The notes beneath the pieces are model-generated. The model had not been told where the DNA came from. It worked only from the letters and a program-made list of their open reading frames with translations, and did no database searches. The translations under genes were made by a program, and so were the position numbers. Of a stretch of DNA of 64,000 bases, positions 17,930-47,810 are shown in pieces (the stretch's first letter is position 1; each line of letters opens with the position of its first letter). Source of the stretch: Scyliorhinus canicula (Eukaryota); assembly GCF_902713615.1 (NCBI RefSeq), contig NC_052167.1, positions 16,775,983 through 16,839,982 of the forward strand, given 5' to 3'.

Positions 17930-18079
17930 CTTGGCACTATGGGAAGAGACGGTTGTTGTGACATATGGAGTTCTGTTCTTTTGAAGGAGATCAATGTACA
18001 CTTCAGCTCCATCGCCACCACGAACTCGAAGCAGACTGAGCAGTTCATTGACATCATGATGGATTCGGAATTCACTCAT
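17930..18079 (-). CDS. TUBGCP2: Gamma-tubulin complex component 2, first coding exon (MSEFRIHHDVNELLSLL...SHSAK)
   Basis: N-terminus matches vertebrate GCP2. ATG at 18079, acceptor AG 18089-18090 (9 nt of UTR), donor AAG|GTAAT, 150 nt phase 0. Confidence 0.96.
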
Positions 18080-18349
18080 GATTTCTTCCTGTGTTAAAAA
18101 GAAACTAAGCGTGAAAAAGTTGACCGAGAATCTCAAATCATTCCATGCCATCATAACTGCATCCTTAATTATATTTCAGCATAATCATTTTACAGCCCAG
18201 TATCTTAACAAGGCCAGTTTTCATTGCTCCCGGAGACATGTCTAAAACAAGGAGAGAGGTAGTAGATGTGAAAAAATGTGGAAACAAACTATTATGGTCA
18301 AAACTCTGTCTGTGAATGGTGTCATTTTAAATGTAGGCTAGAGTTCTCT

Positions 18350-18580
18350 TTTTAAAAAAATTTAGAGTACCCAATTATTTTTTTGCCCCAATTAAGCGGC
18401 AATTTAGCGCGGCCAATTCACCTATCCTGCATATCTTTTTGGGGTTGTGGAGGTGAAATCCACGCAGACACGGGGAGAATGTGTTAACCCTACACAGACA
18501 GTGACCCAAGGCTGGGATTGAACCCGGGTCCTCGGCACCATGAGGCAGCAGTGCTAACCACTGCGCCACCATACTGCCCT
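18350..18580 (-). mobile_element. tRNA-derived SINE
   Basis: Shared head and core. Confidence 0.85.
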
Positions 18581-19041
18581 AGAGTTTAAATCAATCAATA
18601 AAAACTTCCCAAATTTCTGAAGGTTATGTGAGGATAGACAATATTTGTACCAAAACAAAGGAATTAAAAAGTCAAAAGCAAGAATCAGGGGCGCAAAGTG
18701 AACAGGTTGGGGGGGTAATTTCACAGGTTTACATCTACCGCACGTTACTAAGGTACACCTAATCTCTTGCCTGTAGTTGTGCAATTTGTACGCAAACATT
18801 ACATCGAAGCAGGACGGTTAAAGGGCTATAGGTTGTTTATACATCGCACGGCTAACTTTTCACAAAAGTATTCAACAAAACTAACTGTGCAAATTAAGGG
18901 GAGGGCATTGCTGCTGTACTATTTATCCACTGAGTTGAAATTGTGAATTCTCCAATTCCCACCACATTATTCATTAGGTAAATAGTTAACCACAAATTTA
19001 GCTATGCTCGACTTGCAAACAGCAGCCTAAAATCATTAGCA

Positions 19042-19268
19042 ACCGAAGAGAAAATACTGGAGAATCTCAGCAGGTCTGGCAGCATCTGCAGGGAGAGGAA
19101 AGAGCTAACGTTTCGAGTCCAATGACTCTTTGTCACAGCTTTGACAGAGTCATTGGACTCGAAACGTTAGCTCTTTTCTCTCCCTACAGATGCTGCCAGA
19201 CCTGCTGAGATTCTCCAGCATTTTCTCTTTCGTTTCAGATTCCAGCATCCGCAGTAATTTGCTTTTTA
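19042..19268. mobile_element. Palindromic non-autonomous element (probably Penelope terminal-repeat derived) with 13-bp flanking direct repeat
   Basis: Arms about 19041-19136 and 19141-19235 around central AGCT; aaaatcattagca at 19029-19041 and 19269-19281. Confidence 0.8.
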
Positions 19269-20185
19269 AAAATCATTAGCATATTGTAGGCAAGGAGAGC
19301 TTCAACATTCCGCAATACACTTTTTTATTCTAGAACCATTGAGCCTAGAAAATTACTAATTTGAACACCAGTTTCTACAGTCCATATTTGAATAGAAAGG
19401 ACATCTCAGAACCATGAACTACTGCGTAAATAGCAACGACTGTAATCAGTGATGTTTGAATTTTAGTAAGACACATTCATATCTGTTGAGAAGTGTCTTA
19501 TTTACAATACTATAATCGATTAAACAAACTAAGCGGCGGTGAGATACATTGACCAATTTACAAAAACTTTATAAAATTCTAGCTTGGAAAATAATTTAAA
19601 ATCCACAAATTGCACTACAGCTTATGCAAATAAAATAGGCTTGAAAATGAGGTCTGCAAAAGTTCAGCCGTATTTATTCAGAACTAATGGATCCTTGGGT
19701 GTTACCCTCAGTGAGCCGATGCAATACAGATTGCATCATAAACTAAACTAACTAAAGGGCCCTGGAGACAACGGGGAAAAATTGTTTAATAATAATCTTC
19801 ATCAGTGTCACAAGTAGGCTTACATTAACGCTGCAATGAAGTTACTGTGAAAATCCCCGAGTCGCCACACTCCGGCGCCTGTACGGGTACACAGAGGGAG
19901 AATTCAGAATGTCCACAGCAGTGAGGTTTATTCAAACACTGGGAATATCATTTTGTGTCTACTTTCCTTTCAATATCTAGTTTATTGACTTCTATCTTTG
20001 TTCGCTATGATTTCCATTTCTAATTTCTCTCTCTCACTTTTAGTTTTGTTCTTGTCAATTCCTGCTGTCCCATTTCATTATCCCCTCTCACTCTTTCTGT
20101 TGCTGGAATTTGTCCCATTTATCGCCAACTCAATGTTGCATCAACTGAACCTTTCAGGATATAAACCCTCGTTTAGGGGTACCAA

Positions 20186-22320
20186 TTAGGGGTAGGCCAC
20201 TCGGCCCTTCGAGTCTGCTCCGCAATTTAATAAGATCATGCCTGATCTGATTGTAACCTCAACCCCACATTCCTGCCAACCCCGATAACCTTTCACCCCC
20301 TTGCTAATCAAGAATCGATCGAGCTCTGCCTTAAAAATATTTTTATATTTATAAGATTTTGACTCCCCCAACCTTTGAGGAAGAAAGTTCCAGAGACTCA
20401 CGACTCTCATCGCCACTTTAAATAAGCGACCCCTTATTTTTAAAACAGCGACCCCTAATTCTAGATTCTCCGACAAGAAGAAACGTCCTCTCCACATCCA
20501 CCCTGTCAATCAATACCCTTCAGGATCTTCAAGGTTTCGATCAAGTTGCCTCTTACTCTTCGAAACTCCAGTGAATAAATTCCTAACCTGTCCATACTTT
20601 TCTCGTAAGACATTTTGCATCAATCCGGTGATAAATCCACCAATCAGATAATTATTGTGCCTAGCCCCCCCCCCCCACCCAAAGTTATAATACTTGCGAA
20701 TGCTCATAGACTGGAAAGTTCTCTTTTTACAATGCACCAATATAATTTGTGCAGCACAACCCCGCTGAACATGCACTGCCCACGGCGGGATAGCAATTTG
20801 CCTTTATACACCTTTACCACAGCATTTAATGAGAGTATAGGACTAAGACATAGGAGGAGAATTAGGCTATTCAGCCCATCGAGTCTGCTCCACCATTCAA
20901 TCATGGCTGATATGTTTCTCATCCCCATTCTCGTGCCTCCCCCCCATAACCCCCGATCCCCTTATTAATCAAGAACCTATTTATCTCTGTCTTAAAGACA
21001 CTCAGTGACTTGGCCTCCACAGCCGTCTGCAGGCAAAGAGTTCCACAGATTCACCACCCTCTGGCTGAAGATATTCCTCCTCATCTCAGTTTTAGAGGCT
21101 CGTCCCTTCAGTCTGACGCTGTGCCCTCGGGTTCGAGTGCTATCAATAAATATTTTTGAAACCGAGCCAAAGAACGAGATTTCAGAACAGATGGCTAAAA
21201 GGGAGGTTTGAAGAAGACTATTAGAGAAGTGGAGGGGTTTAAGGAGGGACTCCCAGAAACCAGGACCACGGTAGGTGAAAGTGCAGCCAACGATGGTAAT
21301 TAAAACTGGCCTCCGAAGAGGAGTCACATCCATTTCGAAACGTTAACAGTTTCCCTCTCTCCATAGATATTGCCAGACTAGCTGAGTTTTTCCAGCACGC
21401 TCTGTTTTTATTTCAGATCTCCAGCACCCGCAGCATTCTGCTTTTAATGCAATTAAAACTGGGGGATGCGCGGAATGCCAGAATTGGCGGATAGGGCGAG
21501 AGATCTTGCAGGAGGTTTAGACAGAGGGTGGAGGGTTTCAAAAGTAAGACTTTAAAAAAACAAAACGGGAATCTGGAAGGGGGAGGGCACCTGTTTGCAA
21601 TATTCCAAAAGGTTGCAGCATGGGGATGTCACTGCTGCACAATACAATGCACCAACCATGCAAGGTTTAGCTTCACCTGTGAAAACAGGAGGTAGTGGTA
21701 GCTATGGGGAAGGAACATAAGAACACAGAAATTAGCAGAAGTCAGCAATTCACCCCTTCAAGTCTGCACCATTGGCTGATCGCTTCACGGTCTCAAATCC
21801 ACCTCCCTACTCGTACCATATCCCTTTAACCATTTTTTTAATACCAGAAATACATCTATCACCTTCTTGAAACCATTAAATGCCTCAGATCCCATTGCAC
21901 TATGGGGCAGTGAGTTCCACACATTCACCACCCTCTGCGAGAAGTAATGCCTCCTCATTTCAGTTCTAAATCTACCGCCTCTCAACCTATATCCATGACC
22001 TGTCAATCCAGATTTACCCACAAAGGTAAACATTTGGTCTACATTTACTTGATCAGTCCTTTTACACTATACACCTCGATCAGATCCCCTCTAATCCTTC
22101 TAAACTCCAGCGAGTAGAAACCCGCTCCCGACACTGTCTCCTCCCGCTCTCACTCCTCATCCCCAGAACCAATCTGGTGAACCTCCTCTGGATTGCCTCC
22201 AATTCCACCACATCCTTCCTGAAATAAGCAGACCAAAACTGGGCACAATGCTGTAGATGTGATCTTATCAACTCCCGATATAACTGCAACAAGACTGCTC
22301 TACTTTTATACTCCAGTCAT
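20186..22320 (-). mobile_element. Cluster of CR1 3' fragments (about 20186-20610, 20830-21130, 21715-22320)
   Basis: Minus-strand translations FSQRVVNLWNSLP and LYRELIRSHLQHCAQFWS. Confidence 0.75.
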
Positions 22321-22935
22321 AGAGATTTACAATATGGAAACAGGCCCTTCGGCCCAACTTGTCCATGCCACCCAGTATTTACCATGAAGCTAGTCCCAAT
22401 TGTCTGCATTTGGCCCATATCCCTCTATGCCCATCTTACCTATATAAATGTTTTTAGAAGATAAATTTGTTCCTTCTGCAATAAACGTTAACATTTAATT
22501 TGCCTTTTTAAGGTCTGCTGCACCCCTTCTTCCAGAAACACTTGTCTGCAGGAGCAATGCAGCACATTCCAACAACAGCAGGCCAAGCTGTGAAAGAGCA
22601 GGGAGTGTGTGGAGCTGCTGGAGCCGGGGCCGGGGAGCTATCCTGCCAGCCCCGGGCTGCTGGGCCTCTCCTGCCCTGCGCCTCACCCACAGAGACAAAC
22701 AAACCAGCGGCCGGGAGGGGGAGGCCCGGCCGGTTCCCGGCGCCATCTCCTCCCGCTCCCGGCCCTCACCTCCTGGCTGCTGCACAGCCCCCGGAGCCGC
22801 CTTCCCGCTGCAGGAAGCCGAGGCTCCTGCTGCTCCTTTCCGCCTGGGTTGGAGACACACAACAAGGCGAAGGGAGGGGGATGTGATTCCAGCGGGCGCT
22901 AGGGCCCGGTAAGGGAGAGCGCGGGATTGCGGAGT

Positions 22936-23144
22936 GCACGCGTACTGGAGCTGCCGGCCGGGTGACGGCTACTGCGCACGCGTACTAGAGCTGCCGGCCG
23001 GGTGACGGCTACTGCGCCCGCGTACTGGAGCTGCCGGTCGGGTGACGGCTACTACGCACGCGTGGTAGAGCCCACTGGCCCGGCGGCGGTTGGTACGCCT
23101 GCGTAGAGAGCTATTGACCGCGTGACGGCTATAGCGCACGCGCG
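22936..23144. repeat. 40-bp tandem repeat (about 3.3 good copies plus degenerate copies) in the promoter
   Basis: Unit gcacgcgtactggagctgccggccgggtgacggctactgc starts at 22936, 22976, 23016 and 23056; degenerate copy about 23100-23144. Confidence 0.9.
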
Positions 23145-23171
23145 CTGGCGCCACCGTCCCGGGAGTGACGG

Positions 23172-23363
23172 TTGCTGCCCACCGAGCGGTTCGGTTGGCG
23201 CTCCGGAGGCGGTGGCCAGTTGTCAGGCTCCAGGCCCCCGGGGCTGGCGGTGGCGGGTGCCCAGGGCGGCGGCGGTGGTGATGATGGGGCGGCTGCCGCC
23301 GAGTCGCCTTTCACCTTCAGCTCCAGGAGGATCTTCCTGCACAAGGAGGACGAATTCTTCGAA
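23172..23363 (+). CDS. ZNF511: Zinc finger protein 511 exon 1 (..AAAAESPFTFSSRRIFLHKEDEFFE); start codon uncertain
   Basis: Homologous to human APFRFVARPVRFPREHQFFE; donor GAA|GTAGGT. No in-frame ATG after the in-frame TGA at 23166-23168; start shown at the first near-cognate codon (TTG). Confidence 0.75.
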
Positions 23364-23505
23364 GTAGGTTATGGTTGTTGGAGCGGGTGAGACATTAAAC
23401 CGAGTCAGGTCGCCGGCTCCAGTCGGTGGGTGAGGGTTGTGTCCCGGTCCACGTTCATCCATCAACCAAAAGCACTTAAAACAGTTGATCAGCTCATTCC
23501 GTCAT

Positions 23506-24273
23506 TGCTGCTGCCCGCGGGCTCTTGTTGTGCTGCTGCCCGCGGGCTCTTGCCGTGCAGCTGCCCGCGGGCTCTTGCCGTGCTGCTGCCCGTGGGCTCT
23601 TGCCGTGCTGCTGCCCGCGGGCTCTTGCCGTGCAGCTGCCCGTGGGCTCTTGCTGTGCTGCTGCCCGTGGGCTCTTGCTGTGCTGCTGCCCGTGGGCTCT
23701 TGCCGTGCAGCTGCCCGTGGGCTCTTGCCGTGCTGCTGCCCGTGGGCTCTTGCCGTGCTGCTGCCCGTGGGCTCTTGCCGTGCTGCTGCCCGCGGGCTCT
23801 TGCCGTGCTGCTGCCCGCGGGCTCTTGCCGTGCTGCTGCCCGTGGGCTCTTGCCGTGCTGCTGCCCGTGGGCTCTTGCTGTGCTGCTGCCCGTGGGCTCT
23901 TGCTGTGCTGCTGCCCGTGGGCTCTTGCCGTGCTGCTGCCCGTGGGCTCTTGCCGTGCAGCTGCCCGTGGGCTCTTGCCGTGCTGCTGCCCGTGGGCTCT
24001 TGCCGTGCTGCTGCCCGCGGGCTCTTGCCGTGCTGCTGCCCGCGGGCTCTTGCCGTGCAGCTGCCCGCGGGCTCTTGCCGTGCAGCTGCCCGCGGGCTCT
24101 TGCCGTGCAGCTGCCCGCGGGCTCTTGCCCTGCAGCTGCCTGCGGGCTCTTGCCCTGCAGCTGCCCGCGGGCCCTTGTCGTGCCGCGGGCCCTTGCTGTT
24201 CCGCTGCCCGCGGGCCCTTGCCGTTCCGCTGCCCGCGGGCCCTTGCCGTGCCGCTGGCCGTGGGCTCTTGCTG
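23506..24273. repeat. 25-bp GC-rich minisatellite (about 30 copies) in ZNF511 intron 1
   Basis: Unit gctgctgcccg(c/t)gggctcttgccgt; stop-free, which explains the long repetitive ORFs. Confidence 0.97.
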
Positions 24274-24504
24274 TGGTGAAATTGTACATCACAATATTTC
24301 ACAAGTAACAAGTGCGATGAAAGTTTGTTTTCTTTGGTTGTGTTGATTAAGGGGAGAATGTTGGCCAGGACACCAAGAAAACCTTTGCTACTCTTCAAAC
24401 CGTCGCTTGGGATCTTCAATGATGTAAAATGGCCACTTGGTTTTTGTAACTACATCTATCAAATTAGGTCTCTAAAGATCTGAAAATACTATCCACGAAA
24501 TTAG

Positions 24505-24757
24505 CACGGAGACCTAAGTTCGCCTTGAGAGGGTCACTGTTAGGGTTCGCCCGGAGGTGGCAGCCATTTGTCGACTTCTTTGCGGCAAATTAATCATCAG
24601 CAGGGGTTAGCTTAGTTTAGAGTAGGGGGTTAGTAACGGTGGGACCTGTAAGGGAGGAAGACGGCTTTTGCACTACGTTTATAACTTCATGTACATTGTT
24701 TACTTTGTTGTTGTTGTAAAACCATAAATACGACAATAAAATGTTTATTTTTTTAAA
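24505..24757 (+). mobile_element. Truncated L1/Tx1-like LINE 3' end
   Basis: KFALRGSLLGFARRWQPFVDFF resembles an L1-clade ORF2 C-terminus; followed by a 3'UTR with AATAAA. Confidence 0.5.
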
Positions 24758-24759
24758 AA

Positions 24760-25010
24760 GTCAGCCACATTGCTGTGGGTCTGGAGTCACATGTAGGCCA
24801 GACGGGGTAAGAACGGCAGATTTCCTTCTCTAAAGACATTAGTGAACCAGATGGGTTTTAATCGGCAATTTCGTGGTCATCATTAGACTTTAATTCCAGA
24901 TTTTTTTTATTGAATTCGAAATCTGCCATCTGCCCTGGTGGAATTTGAACCTGGGTCCCCACATATTACTCTGGGTCTCTGGACTAGTGACCGTAGCACT
25001 ATGCCACCTC
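24760..25010 (-). mobile_element. Older SINE family (related copies at about 37300-37495 and 57105-57450)
   Basis: Shared ggtaag.acggcagatttccttc..aaag.cattag core and a minus-strand B-box (ggttcaaat.cc). Confidence 0.6.
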
Positions 25011-25230
25011 CTCATGGCCTCATCCAGTAGTTCCATTGCCTAGGCTTATGGGTACATCACTGTCTTTGCTCTGCTCATGATGTGGGCTAAGTTAGCCAAT
25101 TGGCTGCACCATAAGAAGATTTATACTGAGAAAGGATTTGTGTGTGACTGACCAACTTGTAACAATTAAAAGTAGCAGTTCTCAAACCAGTGACTTATAG
25201 AAAATAATTTCATGTTTTATTTTGGTTCAG

Positions 25231-25301
25231 GACGGTGATATCCATAGACATTTATATCTGCGAGATGCCATAACAAGTGTTGGAGAAGTAGAAAGACCCA
25301 C
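25231..25301 (+). CDS. ZNF511: ZNF511 exon 2 (DGDIHRHLYLRDAITSVGEVERPT)
   Basis: ttcAG acceptor, GTAAGA donor; 71 nt; matches human DGDVQRHLYLQD. Confidence 0.93.
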
Positions 25302-25427: not shown

Positions 25428-25629
25428 GGTTTCTGAATTCTGTTGCCATATAGCAGGTTGCAGTCAACTGTTTGACACCCTAGAAAACTACGAACATCAT
25501 TATAATACATTCCACCGCAATGTCTGTTCCTCCTGCAAACGCTCTTTCCCGTCCAGTCACCTGCTAAATATTCACATCCTGGAATGGCACGACTCACTTT
25601 TCCAAATTCTGACAGCAAAACAGAACATG
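25428..25629 (+). CDS. ZNF511: ZNF511 exon 3, two C2H2 fingers (CHIAGCSQLF..HYNTFH; CSSCKRSF..HILEWH)
   Basis: 202 nt; ATG|GTAAGT donor; phase-consistent. Confidence 0.95.
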
Positions 25630-30205: not shown

Positions 30206-30330
30206 TATATATGTTTGGTGGAGAGTTGTACAGAAAAATTCAAGGCTTCCAGTGACCGGAAGAAGCATTTGATCAAAGTTCACGGTTATCCAGCTGACTT
30301 TAGATTTGACAAACCGAAGAAACTGAAACG
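30206..30330 (+). CDS. ZNF511: ZNF511 exon 4, third C2H2 finger (YICLVESCTEKF..HLIKVHGYPADFRFDKPKK)
   Basis: 125 nt; AG/GT; YPADFRFDKPKK hallmark. Confidence 0.95.
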
Positions 30331-34244: not shown

Positions 34245-34451
34245 CAATCAAAAGAATAAAGACAGGAGTTCACATGACATGGATGTGGAAACATCCACTT
34301 GTCAAAAAGAAACAAACAGCATTTTCTGTACAACAGCCGCAGAATCGATGGACCATGCACCGGAGGAAACAATGGAAGCTGAGACTCCATCTGTGACGGG
34401 ACAAGCGAAATCCAGCAATACACTGCATCAGCGGTCTTCATACTCCCACAG
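34245..34451 (+). CDS. ZNF511: ZNF511 exon 5, low-complexity linker (NQKNKDRSSHDMDVET...SSYSHR)
   Basis: Polypyrimidine tract plus gcAG; 207 nt keeps phase 2; lies in ORF 34168..34497. Confidence 0.8.
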
Positions 34452-35516: not shown

Positions 35517-35583
35517 GGTGCCAGCAACAATTTGTTTTGGCCATGGGTCAGTCCGTGGCTTCAATCCAAGGAAAAAGAAGTGA
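35517..35583 (+). CDS. ZNF511: ZNF511 last coding exon (VPATICFGHGSVRGFNPRKKK*)
   Basis: Matches human IPSTICFGQGAARGF; TGA at 35581-35583. Confidence 0.93.
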
Positions 35584-40487: not shown

Positions 40488-41497
40488 TGACCATCAATGT
40501 ACAAAAAGAAACAAGTGACCCATTTTACCATCTGCAACGCACTGTACACTCGTGTAAGGAAATGTAAACAGCTCTTAAAAAGTATCTTAAATGCACTTAA
40601 TATATATTTAAATATCGGTAAACACTCTTCAGAGTTGCTCCCTCCTGCTACGGCTGGCGGAGGTTGCGTCCAAAAAGCAAAATAAAAACAGAAGATAGAA
40701 AAACCCAGCCCTACTTCTACACGGTTTTTTGTTATATTTACAAGGAGGTCTGGTTGATCGAAAACAAAAAGTCCTTAAGCAAATGATCAGATCACACTTT
40801 CTGAAAACAAACCTCGTTTTAAACCTCCCCTGTCAAAGGGGTTGGGGCTGTTTTATACACAGATGAAGTTATAAAATGACAGTGAAAAGGTGAGACAATT
40901 TAGCAACGCCAAAACAAATAATATATAACTTCAACCCCCTCCCTGGAGCCACGCGTTATCAAGTCCTATGGCATTTGCTCCCCTTCAGCAAGTCTTGCTT
41001 GGTCCGTTCAAAGTGAGCTTCCAACTTTTCCCCCCACCCCAAATTAAAAGTCAGGAATCAACTCAAAAGTTCGTCAGGGAACACTGCAAAGCTCCAGAGT
41101 CCGCGGGACTGATCATCAAAACCCAAAGGCACTTGAAACCAAACGACAGCTATAATTATGTGGAGAGGATTTATCGCTTTCTTTTCTCGTCCCGCCGTGG
41201 AAATTTGGGGGGGGGGGGGCTTTTTTGGGGCGGTAGAGACTTCGATTTCTAGATATCGACTGTTCCGTGTATTGTTGCACTTTGTGAAGAGGGGGGAGGC
41301 TGACCCGCTTAAGTCTGGGGCAGAAAGTGGTGGGGGAAAATCCCAACCACTGCAAACTGTAGCAGATTATTGTGCAAGGATGTTGCCAGCCTCTGGAACA
41401 CTGCACTGCAACCTTGGGGTAGATGAGTTCAATTCTTTCAGGGGGTGCTGAATAAAGGCAGTGGGGGCTGGGGGGGGGGGGGGGGCACGGTTACAAT

Positions 41498-41913
41498 CTA
41501 TGATAAATAATACATTCCATATGTGACCGGGGCTGTGAGAAAGCCCGGCACAGGGAGGCCAGGGCGCTGGAAGGCGTTAGACGGTCCGTACAAGCTGGGG
41601 GAGGTGAGGTGCGAGGCGATGGGAAACGGCAGGCCGAACGACGGCAGCAGAGGCTTGGCCGCCAGTTTGAGCTTCTCCAGTTCGGCTTCCTGTAGCCTCT
41701 TGGCCTTGGCCCGTCGGTTCTGGAACCAGATCTTGACCTGGGTCTCGGTCAGGTTGAGGGAGCTGGAGAACTCGGCCCTCTCGGCGATAGACAGGTACTG
41801 TTTCTGGCGGAACTTGCGCTCCAGGGACAGCAGTTGCGAGGTGGTGAAGGGCGTCCTGGGTTTCCTGTTGTTTTTGTGTTTCCTCAGCGTGCACGGGGGA
41901 GGACTGGGGTGCC
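41498..41913 (-). CDS. MSX3: Msx3 exon 2, homeodomain ([57 protein letters not shown])...YGMYYLS*
   Basis: Canonical Msx homeodomain. C-terminal GMYYLS and adjacency to ZNF511/TUBGCP2 (as in mouse) point to Msx3. 415+416 nt gives 276 aa plus stop. Confidence 0.92.
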
Positions 41914-41967
41914 CTGCAATAAAAACAACCAGTTTTATTTAAAAATAAAGCACTTCAGCTGCTGTGC

Positions 41968-43349
41968 ATGGGGCGGACCATTCAAAACACTCAATTCTAC
42001 TCAACATGGAGCAAACCATTCAAAACACTGAACTCTACTCTACATGGAGAGGACAATTCAAAACTCTGAACTCTACATGGAGCAAACCATTCAAAACACT
42101 GAACTCTACTCGACATGGAGCGGACCATTCAAAACACTGAAATCTACTCTACATTGAGTGGACCATTCAAAACACTGAACTCTACTCTACATGGAGCGGA
42201 CCATTCAAAACACTGAACTCTACTCTACATGGAGCGGACTATTCAAAACACTGAACTCTACTCTACATGGAGCGGACCATTCAAAACACTGAACTCTACT
42301 CTACATGGAGCGGACTATTCAAAACACTGAACTCTACTCTACATGGAGCGGACCATTCAAAACACTGAACTCTACTCTACATGGAGTGGACCATTCAATA
42401 CACTGAACTCTACTCTACATGGAGCGGACCATTCAATACACTGAACTCTACTCTACATGGAGCAAACCATTCAAAACACTGAACTCTACTCGACATGGAG
42501 CAAACCATTCAAAACACTGAACTCTACTCTACATGGAGAGGACAATTCAAAACTCTGAACTCTACATGGAGCAAACCATTCAAAACACTGAACTCTACTC
42601 TACATGGAGCGGACCATTCAAAACACTGAAATCTACTCTACATTGAGTGGACCATTCAAAACACTGAACTCTACTCTACATGGAGCGGACCATTCAAAAC
42701 ACTGAAATCTACTCTACATTGAGTGGACCATTCAAAACACTGAACTCTACTCTACATGGAGCGGACCATTCAAAACACTGAACTCTACTCTACATGGAGC
42801 GGACTATTCAAAACACTGAACTCTACTCTACATGGAGCGGACCATTCAAAACACTGAACTCTACTCTACATGGAGCGGACTATTCAAAACACTGAACTCT
42901 ACTCTACATGGAGCGGACCATTCAAAACACTGAACTCTACTCTACATGGAGCGGACCATTCAAAACACTGAACTCTACTCTACATGGAGCGGACCATTCA
43001 AAACACTGAACTCTACTCTACATGGAGCGGACCATTCAAAACACTGAACTCTACTCTACATGGAGCGGACCATTCAAAACACTGAACTCTACGTGGAGTG
43101 GACCATTCAAAACACTGAACTCTACTCTACATGGAGCGGACCATTCAAAACACTGAACTCTACTCTACATGGAGCGGACCATTCAAAACACTGAACTCTA
43201 CTCTACATGGAGCGGACCATTCAAAACACTGAACTCTACTCTACATGGAGCGGACCATTCAAAACACTGAACTCTACTCTACATGGAGCAGACCATTCAA
43301 AACACTGAACTCTACTCTACATGGAGCAGACCATTCAAAACACTGAACT
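41968..43349. repeat. 38-bp minisatellite (about 36 copies) in the Msx3 intron
   Basis: Unit atggagcggaccattcaaaacactgaactctactctac. Confidence 0.97.
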
Positions 43350-47076: not shown

Positions 47077-47248
47077 NNNNNNNNNNNNNNNNNNNNNNNN
47101 NNNNNNNNNNNNNNNNNNNNNNNNNNNNNNNNNNNNNNNNNNNNNNNNNNNNNNNNNNNNNNNNNNNNNNNNNNNNNNNNNNNNNNNNNNNNNNNNNNNN
47201 NNNNNNNNNNNNNNNNNNNNNNNNNNNNNNNNNNNNNNNNNNNNNNNN
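47077..47248. other. Assembly gap (172 N)
   Basis: Run of n. Confidence 1.
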
Positions 47249-47810
47249 GGGGGAGAGGGAGAGGGGGGGGAGAGGGAGAGGGGGGGGGGGGGGGAGAGGG
47301 AGAGGGGGGGGGGGGGGGAGAGGGAGAGGGGGGGGGGGGGGAGAGGGAGAGGGGGGGGGGGAGGAGGGAGAGGGGGGGGGGGGAGAGGGAGAGGGGGGGG
47401 GGAGAGGGAGAGGGGGGGGGGAGAGGGAGAGGGAGAGAAGGGGGGGGGGGAGAGGGGGGGAGAGGGAGAGGGGGGGGGGGGAGGGGGCGGGGGGAGGAGG
47501 GAGGAGAGGGGGGGGGGGATAAACTAGCACGCCTGGTATTTAATACAAGCTACTCTTCAATATCAGAAGTTCCGAGGTACATTTTCTGCATATTTTCATT
47601 GGACAGATATTCCTGATTGGTAAATCTGTGCTTCCCTCCCCCCCACTACCCCCCCACCCCCCACCCCACACCCCCCCCCCCCCCCCCCCCCCCCACTCCC
47701 CCCCACCCCCCCCCCCCCCCCACTCCCCCCCACACTCTCCCCCCCACCTCTCCCCCCCCCACTCTCCCCTCCCCCCCCCCACTCCTCCCCCACTCTCCCC
47801 CCACTCACAC
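47249..47810. repeat. Polypurine G/GA tract (47249-47519) and C-rich tract (about 47630-47810)
   Basis: Low-complexity G runs, then C runs, seen directly. Confidence 0.95.

Follow-up and report, generated by a model that had tools for sequence, protein, structure and literature searches.

A conserved zinc-finger gene without an in-frame AUG ahead of its core: candidate near-cognate initiation of ZNF511 in the catshark Scyliorhinus canicula

How might a conserved reading frame be translated when it contains no AUG with which to open? The question is raised by ZNF511 of the catshark Scyliorhinus canicula, which we analyzed in a stretch of 64,000 nucleotides of contig NC_052167.1 (assembly GCF_902713615.1, positions 16,775,983 to 16,839,982 of the forward strand; called "the window" here and numbered from its first letter). 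The window carries a six-exon ZNF511 gene on its plus strand, all of whose introns are bounded by GT and AG. Its parts are the following:

23169-23363, plus strand: exon 1, an open frame of 65 codons with no ATG, followed by the donor GT at 23364
23304-23363, plus strand: conserved core SPFTFSSRRIFLHKEDEFFE, within exon 1
25231-25301, plus strand: exon 2
25428-25629, plus strand: exon 3, with two C2H2 fingers; the first in-frame ATG (25627-25629) is the codon that ends it
30206-30330, plus strand: exon 4, with the third finger
34245-34451, plus strand: exon 5
35517-35583, plus strand: exon 6, with the stop TGA at 35581-35583

The spliced translation of these exons is identical, residue for residue, to P0267 and to the RefSeq protein XP_038639200.1. 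The latter is titled "zinc finger protein 511, partial [Scyliorhinus canicula]", and its first residue is the codon right after an in-frame TGA; the absent start has thus already been flagged publicly by RefSeq's "partial". No explanation for it was found in the literature or in the annotation, and no paper was found that combines "ZNF511" with "non-AUG". The gene is a ZNF511 orthologue by its best matches (ZNF511 proteins), its exon structure, its C2H2 fingers and its divergently transcribed TUBGCP2 neighbour, and across its 288 codons and six exons there is no stop, frameshift or splice-site defect. Two other features of the window lie downstream of ZNF511: a homeodomain gene on the minus strand (from about 41498 onward, annotated publicly with a 276-aa product, at a local G+C peak of 41001-42000), and an assembly gap of 172 N (47077-47248) that is followed by G/A-rich low-complexity sequence (47250-47800) with many spurious protein matches.

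The frame that runs through exon 1 (frame 0) is closed on its upstream side by a TGA at 23166, and between that stop and the conserved protein core it contains no AUG. The elements of exon 1 that matter to the argument are these:

23166-23168, plus strand: in-frame TGA that closes frame 0 upstream, part of the GTGACGG of the last unit of a tandem array
23172-23177, plus strand: TTG and CTG in weak context (C or T at -3, C at +4)
23235-23243, plus strand: C5G4 run, upstream of which S. torazame follows the +1 frame and downstream of which it follows frame 0
23244-23252, plus strand: the best candidate starts (G at -3 and at +4 in both), CTG 23244-23246 and GTG 23250-23252
23265-23300, plus strand: predicted GC hairpin, 23265-23273 pairing with 23292-23300 (8 G-C pairs and 1 G-U pair, 18-nt loop)
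23281-23286, plus strand: ATG ATG in the +1 frame, within the Asp-Asp-Gly codons GAT GAT GGG

The coordinates given in the original prediction for this frame, its stop, its near-cognate codons and the AUGs are all correct, as is its placing of the first in-frame ATG at 25627-25629, which is codon 156 and follows two of the three fingers. The in-frame near-cognate codons of exon 1 are TTG 23172, CTG 23175, TTG 23220, CTG 23244 and GTG 23250. Judged by composition, the absence of an in-frame ATG from 65 GC-rich codons is unremarkable (P = 0.59), and there is no ATG in any of the frames of 22884-23280, for which dinucleotide shuffles give P(0) = 0.06. The oddity is biological and not compositional: a conserved open reading frame is without a start codon.

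Where does the coding sequence begin? In order-shuffling tests, frame 0 of 23238-23306 (PGLAVAGAQGGGGGDDGAAAAES) matches the proteins of the great white, basking and bamboo sharks and of the cloudy catshark (p <= 0.002), and the other two frames of this interval show no such match to the four sharks; the block is of low complexity and G/A-rich, and these matches do not separate conservation of the DNA from conservation of the protein. Upstream of 23238, local alignment scores for frame 0 are not above those of composition-preserving shuffles. The idea that RLLPTE might be a remnant of an ancestral MLLPPE was dropped, the resemblance being no better than chance in a shuffle test. Within this upstream stretch GTGACGGTTG is conserved, as a non-coding promoter motif that is also found 50 nt upstream of the elephant-fish AUG.

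The sister species S. torazame was compared at the protein level. Its N-terminus upstream of 23238 follows the window's +1 frame (score 59, p < 0.003); a frameshifting indel at the C5G4 run therefore separates the two Scyliorhinus species, which are further distinguished by additional shifts and by extra units of the array. Between SPFTF and the C-terminus the two proteins are 97% identical (7 differences in 244 residues) with no stop or frameshift; the protein of exons 2-4 is identical, and when the changes are judged against outgroups they are about evenly split between the two lineages. The simplest reading of these comparisons is that coding constraint would have been lost upstream of about 23238 and retained downstream of it in the catshark. 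The RefSeq start codon of S. torazame lies within a motif homologous to the module of the array, an ATG there standing against an ACG in the catshark. Attempts to find the homologue of an ancestral ATG gave discordant placements, the whale shark ATG falling on ACG 23138 in a pairwise alignment and near CCCACC 23178-23183 in a three-way one; the placement is ambiguous because the motifs are repeated, and a proposed ACG for ATG replacement in the basking shark was abandoned on account of the same ambiguity.

These upstream changes lie in a promoter that ZNF511 shares with its neighbour, a gene recognized by its Pfam GCP_N/GCP_C matches as TUBGCP2. The two genes are arranged head-to-head, their first exons separated by about 300 bp or less, and the interval holds the following:

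22769-22924, minus strand: non-coding exon 1 of TUBGCP2, seen in contigs of three runs and spliced at 22769
22926-23178, no strand assigned: 40-bp tandem array of about six units, the last ones diverged, that fills the shared promoter and enters the 5' end of the ZNF511 open reading frame

The TUBGCP2 contigs continue past 22769 into 18058-18087 on the minus strand, where they read ATG AGT GAA TTC CGA ATC CAT (MSEFRIH); the TUBGCP2 protein thus begins in exon 2, and intron 1 of that gene is 18088-22768. Every unit of the 40-bp array contains TGACG and GCGCACGCG, which we take to be CRE-like and NRF1-like, respectively. The last, diverged unit contributes both the TGA at 23166 and the first codons of what has been called the ZNF511 open reading frame. 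Whale shark, zebra shark and elephant fish each have one copy of the motif GTGACGG...GCGCACGCGC in the corresponding position; in the elephant fish it is about 50 nt upstream of the AUG, so it is a promoter or leader motif and not coding sequence. A second minisatellite, 25 bp x 31 with 93% matches (TGCTGCTGCCCGCGGGCTCTTGCCG, 23506-24275), occupies intron 1 of ZNF511 from about 140 bp after the exon-1 donor.

If the coding sequence is conserved only from about 23238, two of the near-cognate codons are well placed to open it. CTG 23244 (ccggggCTGg) and GTG 23250 (ctggcgGTGg) both have strong Kozak contexts, lie upstream of the conserved residues and are the sole in-frame near-cognates between the frameshift point and the conserved core. 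TTG 23172 and CTG 23175 could possibly be used as starts only if the mRNA begins further upstream; in a three-way DNA alignment GGTTGCTG falls on the nucleotides that immediately precede the ATG of the whale and zebra sharks. The sequence GGCGGTGGCG in the 23244-23252 region is identical in whale shark and zebra shark. This identity lends some support to the sequence as assembled; we do not count it in favour of a GUG start, since in those two sharks it is ordinary coding sequence downstream of an AUG. The predicted hairpin has its stem starting 12 nt downstream of GUG 23250 (18 nt downstream of CUG 23244), and its loop contains both out-of-frame AUGs. The predicted fold of 23236-23363 has an energy of -66 kcal/mol (z = -2.5 against dinucleotide shuffles), a modest z for a kind of stable folding that is expected of GC-rich leaders anyway. 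Hairpins located 14 nt (Kozak 1990) or 18 nt (PTEN-beta) downstream are reported in a review to strengthen weak and non-AUG starts (PMC5666671).

The AUGs at 23281 and 23284 are, as originally described, in the +1 frame, and after splicing they open a 41-aa reading frame (MMGRLPPS...ICEMP) that ends at TAA 25271-25273. The homologous ATG is also in the +1 frame in whale shark DNA, zebra shark DNA and skate RNA contigs; in four skate RNA contigs the homologue GATGGCGGC is in the +1 frame downstream of the skate's in-frame AUG. The out-of-frame ATGs are a by-product of Asp-Gly codons. They supply the main internal objection to a near-cognate start. Under the usual 50-55-nt rule, nonsense-mediated decay is expected of a six-exon mRNA whose stop lies in exon 2. 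Two well-placed AUGs lying 30-40 nt past the candidate starts would capture most leaky-scanning ribosomes and should make ZNF511 mRNA a target of that decay, which is odd for a housekeeping-type gene; these downstream AUGs argue for low output and an unstable mRNA. A programmed -1 frameshift from the +1 AUGs into frame 0 was considered and rejected, as the slippery heptamer X XXY YYZ is absent from the spliced RNA 23281-25273 in any phase.

Might the start codon be missing from the sequence and not from the gene? An assembly indel was among the readings first proposed for this locus. We take the S. canicula assembly to be a long-read one of the CLR generation, error-prone in GC-rich first exons, and exon 1 is about 75% G+C and adjoins two minisatellites. 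An assembly or haplotype error in exon 1 could be as small as one G: with one more in 23286-23289, after ATG 23284, MMGAAAAESPFTF would be in frame, a tidy start with a short, ray-like N-terminus. There is, however, no ATG upstream of 23281 in any frame, so indel errors there cannot create a start, and a single indel could rescue no AUGs other than those of GATGGGGCGGCTG, a string that the whale and zebra sharks share letter for letter, with all four G, in loci from two independent assemblies. An extra base would moreover break the frame relation between the G/A/D-rich block 23238-23303 and SPFTF, which are in frame with one another in the window and in all eight of the other sharks compared; likewise, GGGDGADAESPFTF stands in one frame in both of the independent assemblies of S. 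torazame, and the RefSeq label of the catshark protein is "partial" only, with no "LOW QUALITY PROTEIN" frameshift correction. The RNA data can be read both ways. One stranded 100-nt raw RNA read lies on 23231-23327 in the antisense-mate orientation that is expected for a plus-strand mRNA; it covers 97 reference positions at 95-99% likeness and so carries some difference. Sampled 31-mers of 23120-23400 are present at 68-82% in 18 runs from seven studies, runs that look like RNA; these shares fit contigs beginning near 23145-23165, and they are the same for a perfect match with a transcription start near 23150 as for a longer transcript with one variant, so that they are also compatible with an error. 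The Logan catshark transcript contigs gave no match to the exon-1 peptide or to ZNF511 residues 156-288. On this balance the indel reading is disfavoured, and we regard an error in exon 1 as very unlikely.

An AUG could also be supplied by an unrecognized exon, either a far-upstream mini-exon spliced into exon 1 (possible acceptors inside it include ...CCGGAG|G 23208 and ...TTGTCAG|G 23226) or an alternative first exon joined to exon 2. Relatives give this idea some substance: in an older S. torazame model an extra exon upstream is spliced on at ...AK|SPGPGL, alternative first exons are joined to exon 2 in Pristiophorus isoform X3 and Narcine isoform X2, and the whale and zebra sharks retain an AUG by means of a mini-intron, so AUG solutions of this general kind do occur in sharks. 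In the last two species ATG CGC AGT G, a 10-nt coding piece, is followed by a mini-intron of 63 nt in the whale shark (L006 2191-2264) and 62 nt in the zebra shark (L007 1501-1573). Its removal restores the frame in both and gives the same MRSEGI... product. Left unspliced, the sequence runs into an in-frame TGA in the whale shark and into a frameshift in the zebra shark, as if a decayed stretch of 5' coding sequence had been turned into an intron. (RefSeq models the whale shark protein differently, at 410 aa and with two odd upstream exons instead.) The window offers no usable form of the S. torazame, the Pristiophorus or the mini-intron solution. Most of the stretch that corresponds to the mini-intron is missing from the catshark, where there is no ATG, and no GT at the position of the whale shark donor. 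What corresponds to the additional S. torazame exon is a relic at 21191-21269 on the plus strand that stops after six codons, and the counterpart of the alternative Pristiophorus X3 exon (23391-23492, plus strand) has TGA for ATG and no GT donor. The relic is 84% identical over 19 residues, lies inside TUBGCP2 intron 1 and reads ATG GCT AAA AGG GAG GTT TGA; the second copy is at the start of intron 1 of ZNF511 and resembles the Pristiophorus japonicus exon (FIPQPTSLKTDEQ against FIHQPKALKTVDQ). The upstream exon suggested in the original prediction, with its donor at 22909, can be rejected, since its ATG 22881 is followed at once by TGA and both lie within the minus-strand exon 1 of TUBGCP2. 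In addition, RefSeq, which draws on RNA-seq, kept the coding sequence 5'-partial and added no exon, and splicing directly to exon 2 would lose the strongly conserved SPFTF...EFFE segment. We therefore judge an unrecognized exon to be unlikely.

Alternatively, the gene may be translationally crippled by a recent loss of its start, making either little or no full-length ZNF511, only the 41-aa +1 peptide, or a 133-aa product from Met156. S. torazame still has an annotated upstream in-frame AUG, the frameshift and array differences upstream of 23238 distinguish the two species, so that such a loss could be young, and the first AUGs reached by a scanning ribosome are out of frame and in good context. 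The slow evolution of shark proteins also makes an intact reading frame weak proof of current function. Against this stand the full set of 288 codons in six exons free of stops, frameshifts and splice-site defects, an exon 2-4 protein equal to that of S. torazame with catshark-specific changes no commoner than torazame-specific ones, and the presence of exon-1 words in the 18 RNA-like runs of seven studies; the Met156 product would be without two of the three fingers. Loss of function of this kind thus seems quite unlikely, if somewhat less so than a sequence error.

The reading that we prefer is near-cognate initiation at CUG 23244 or GUG 23250, to which we would give about an even chance. 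The originally proposed non-AUG start stands as the best explanation of the locus, on the strength of coding similarity from 23238, G at -3 and +4 and a stem 12-18 nt downstream; the sequence features, the intactness of the exons and the species comparisons are established, and the 5' end of the mRNA, the production of protein and the identity of the start codon are inferred from them. The proposed course of events is as follows. Catshark ZNF511 would have no AUG able to open its conserved reading frame, its 5' coding end lying in the GC-rich promoter shared with TUBGCP2, which has apparently been reshaped by the 40-bp minisatellite, by point changes and by frameshifting indels; as a result of this reshaping the open reading frame upstream of about 23238 no longer behaves as coding. 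Scanning 40S subunits would find a leader without an AUG, and a fraction of them would initiate with Met-tRNAi at CUG 23244 or GUG 23250, both codons presumably helped by G at -3 and +4 and by the stable GC hairpin whose stem is 12-18 nt downstream. The product would be a ZNF511 protein with about 18-20 residues before the conserved SPFTF motif. Subunits that scan past this point would start at the +1 AUGs 23281/23284 and make the 41-aa peptide that ends in exon 2.

Three known genes provide points of comparison. EIF4G2 (DAP5/NAT1/p97) is translated solely from a GUG in mouse and human (PMC5666671; PMC13754004), TEAD1 (TEF-1) solely from an upstream AUU (PMC5666671), and PTEN-beta from an AUU that depends on a hairpin 18 nt downstream (PMC5666671). 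Catshark ZNF511 is like EIF4G2 in being a conserved cellular gene whose main open reading frame is without an AUG and has a near-cognate codon with a purine at -3, G at +4 and a GC-rich leader. It differs in that GUG initiation of EIF4G2 has been shown by experiment and is conserved, whereas the catshark case is known from its sequence, and its AUG-less state may be confined to one species or a few sharks. Nor do the catshark codons share the NAT1 motif GCCGCC(A/G)NNXXXG, which has been described as reinforced specifically in mammals (PMC13754004): neither has GCCGCC at -9 to -4. CTG 23244 has CCCCCGG at -9 to -3, with 4 of 7 NAT1 matches and C in place of G at the key -6 position, and GTG 23250 has GGGCTGG there, with 2 of 7; both have the G at +4 and, as C, the non-G at +5 that the motif calls for. 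The combination of a candidate non-AUG start with favourable context and predicted downstream structure recalls TEAD1 and PTEN-beta. Those genes have an in-frame AUG downstream of the non-AUG site, which serves to add an N-terminus or to replace one; in catshark ZNF511 the next in-frame AUG is codon 156, beyond two zinc fingers, and two out-of-frame AUGs lie between the candidate start and the core.

How unusual is the catshark among its relatives? We compared RefSeq ZNF511 models of 20 cartilaginous-fish species, with which the catshark gene shares six exons, the head-to-head TUBGCP2 neighbour, three C2H2 fingers, the SPFTF...EFFEDGD core and a G/A/D-rich block before the core. Skates, rays, elephant fish, smooth-hound, frilled-type and saw sharks all have an in-frame AUG 8-50 codons before SPFTF, at places that are not homologous. 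Rays, skates, elephant fish and smooth-hound have a proximal start, Heptranchias and Pristiophorus a distal and conserved one (MLS.G.LELQREW), and the bullhead, bamboo and great white sharks and the cloudy catshark have starts that differ from both. The basking shark and epaulette shark RefSeq proteins are also 5'-partial, a likeness between protein models that says nothing of its cause in the DNA. Some features of the skate gene may be recorded here: in its RNA contigs (L001-L004) the in-frame AUG lies as little as 14 nt from where the contig ends, and the contigs contain a variable (GAT GTT)n Asp-Val repeat, which is probably behind the "LOW QUALITY PROTEIN" flag on the Leucoraja RefSeq entry.

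This pattern fits repeated turnover of the start codon at the GC-rich, repeat-prone 5' end of ZNF511. More tentatively, and with rather more doubt than confidence, the catshark (perhaps with the basking and epaulette sharks) can be pictured as a living AUG-less state in that turnover, kept going by CUG or GUG, the decayed stretch having become a mini-intron in the whale and zebra sharks. In practical terms the lack of an AUG accounts for the RefSeq "partial", and the annotated N-termini of shark ZNF511 proteins are not mutually comparable. Few genes are known whose product is made solely from a non-AUG codon, and most of them came to light by accident. If it is true, catshark ZNF511 is a natural example of a gene surviving between the loss of one AUG and the gain of another. 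With a clear new case in a vertebrate that evolves slowly, the loss and replacement of start codons could be followed in a natural series in which relatives have found other solutions (an AUG newly gained upstream, a mini-intron, or an AUG in a proximal place), and that series would show what level of near-cognate initiation is enough for a housekeeping-type gene.
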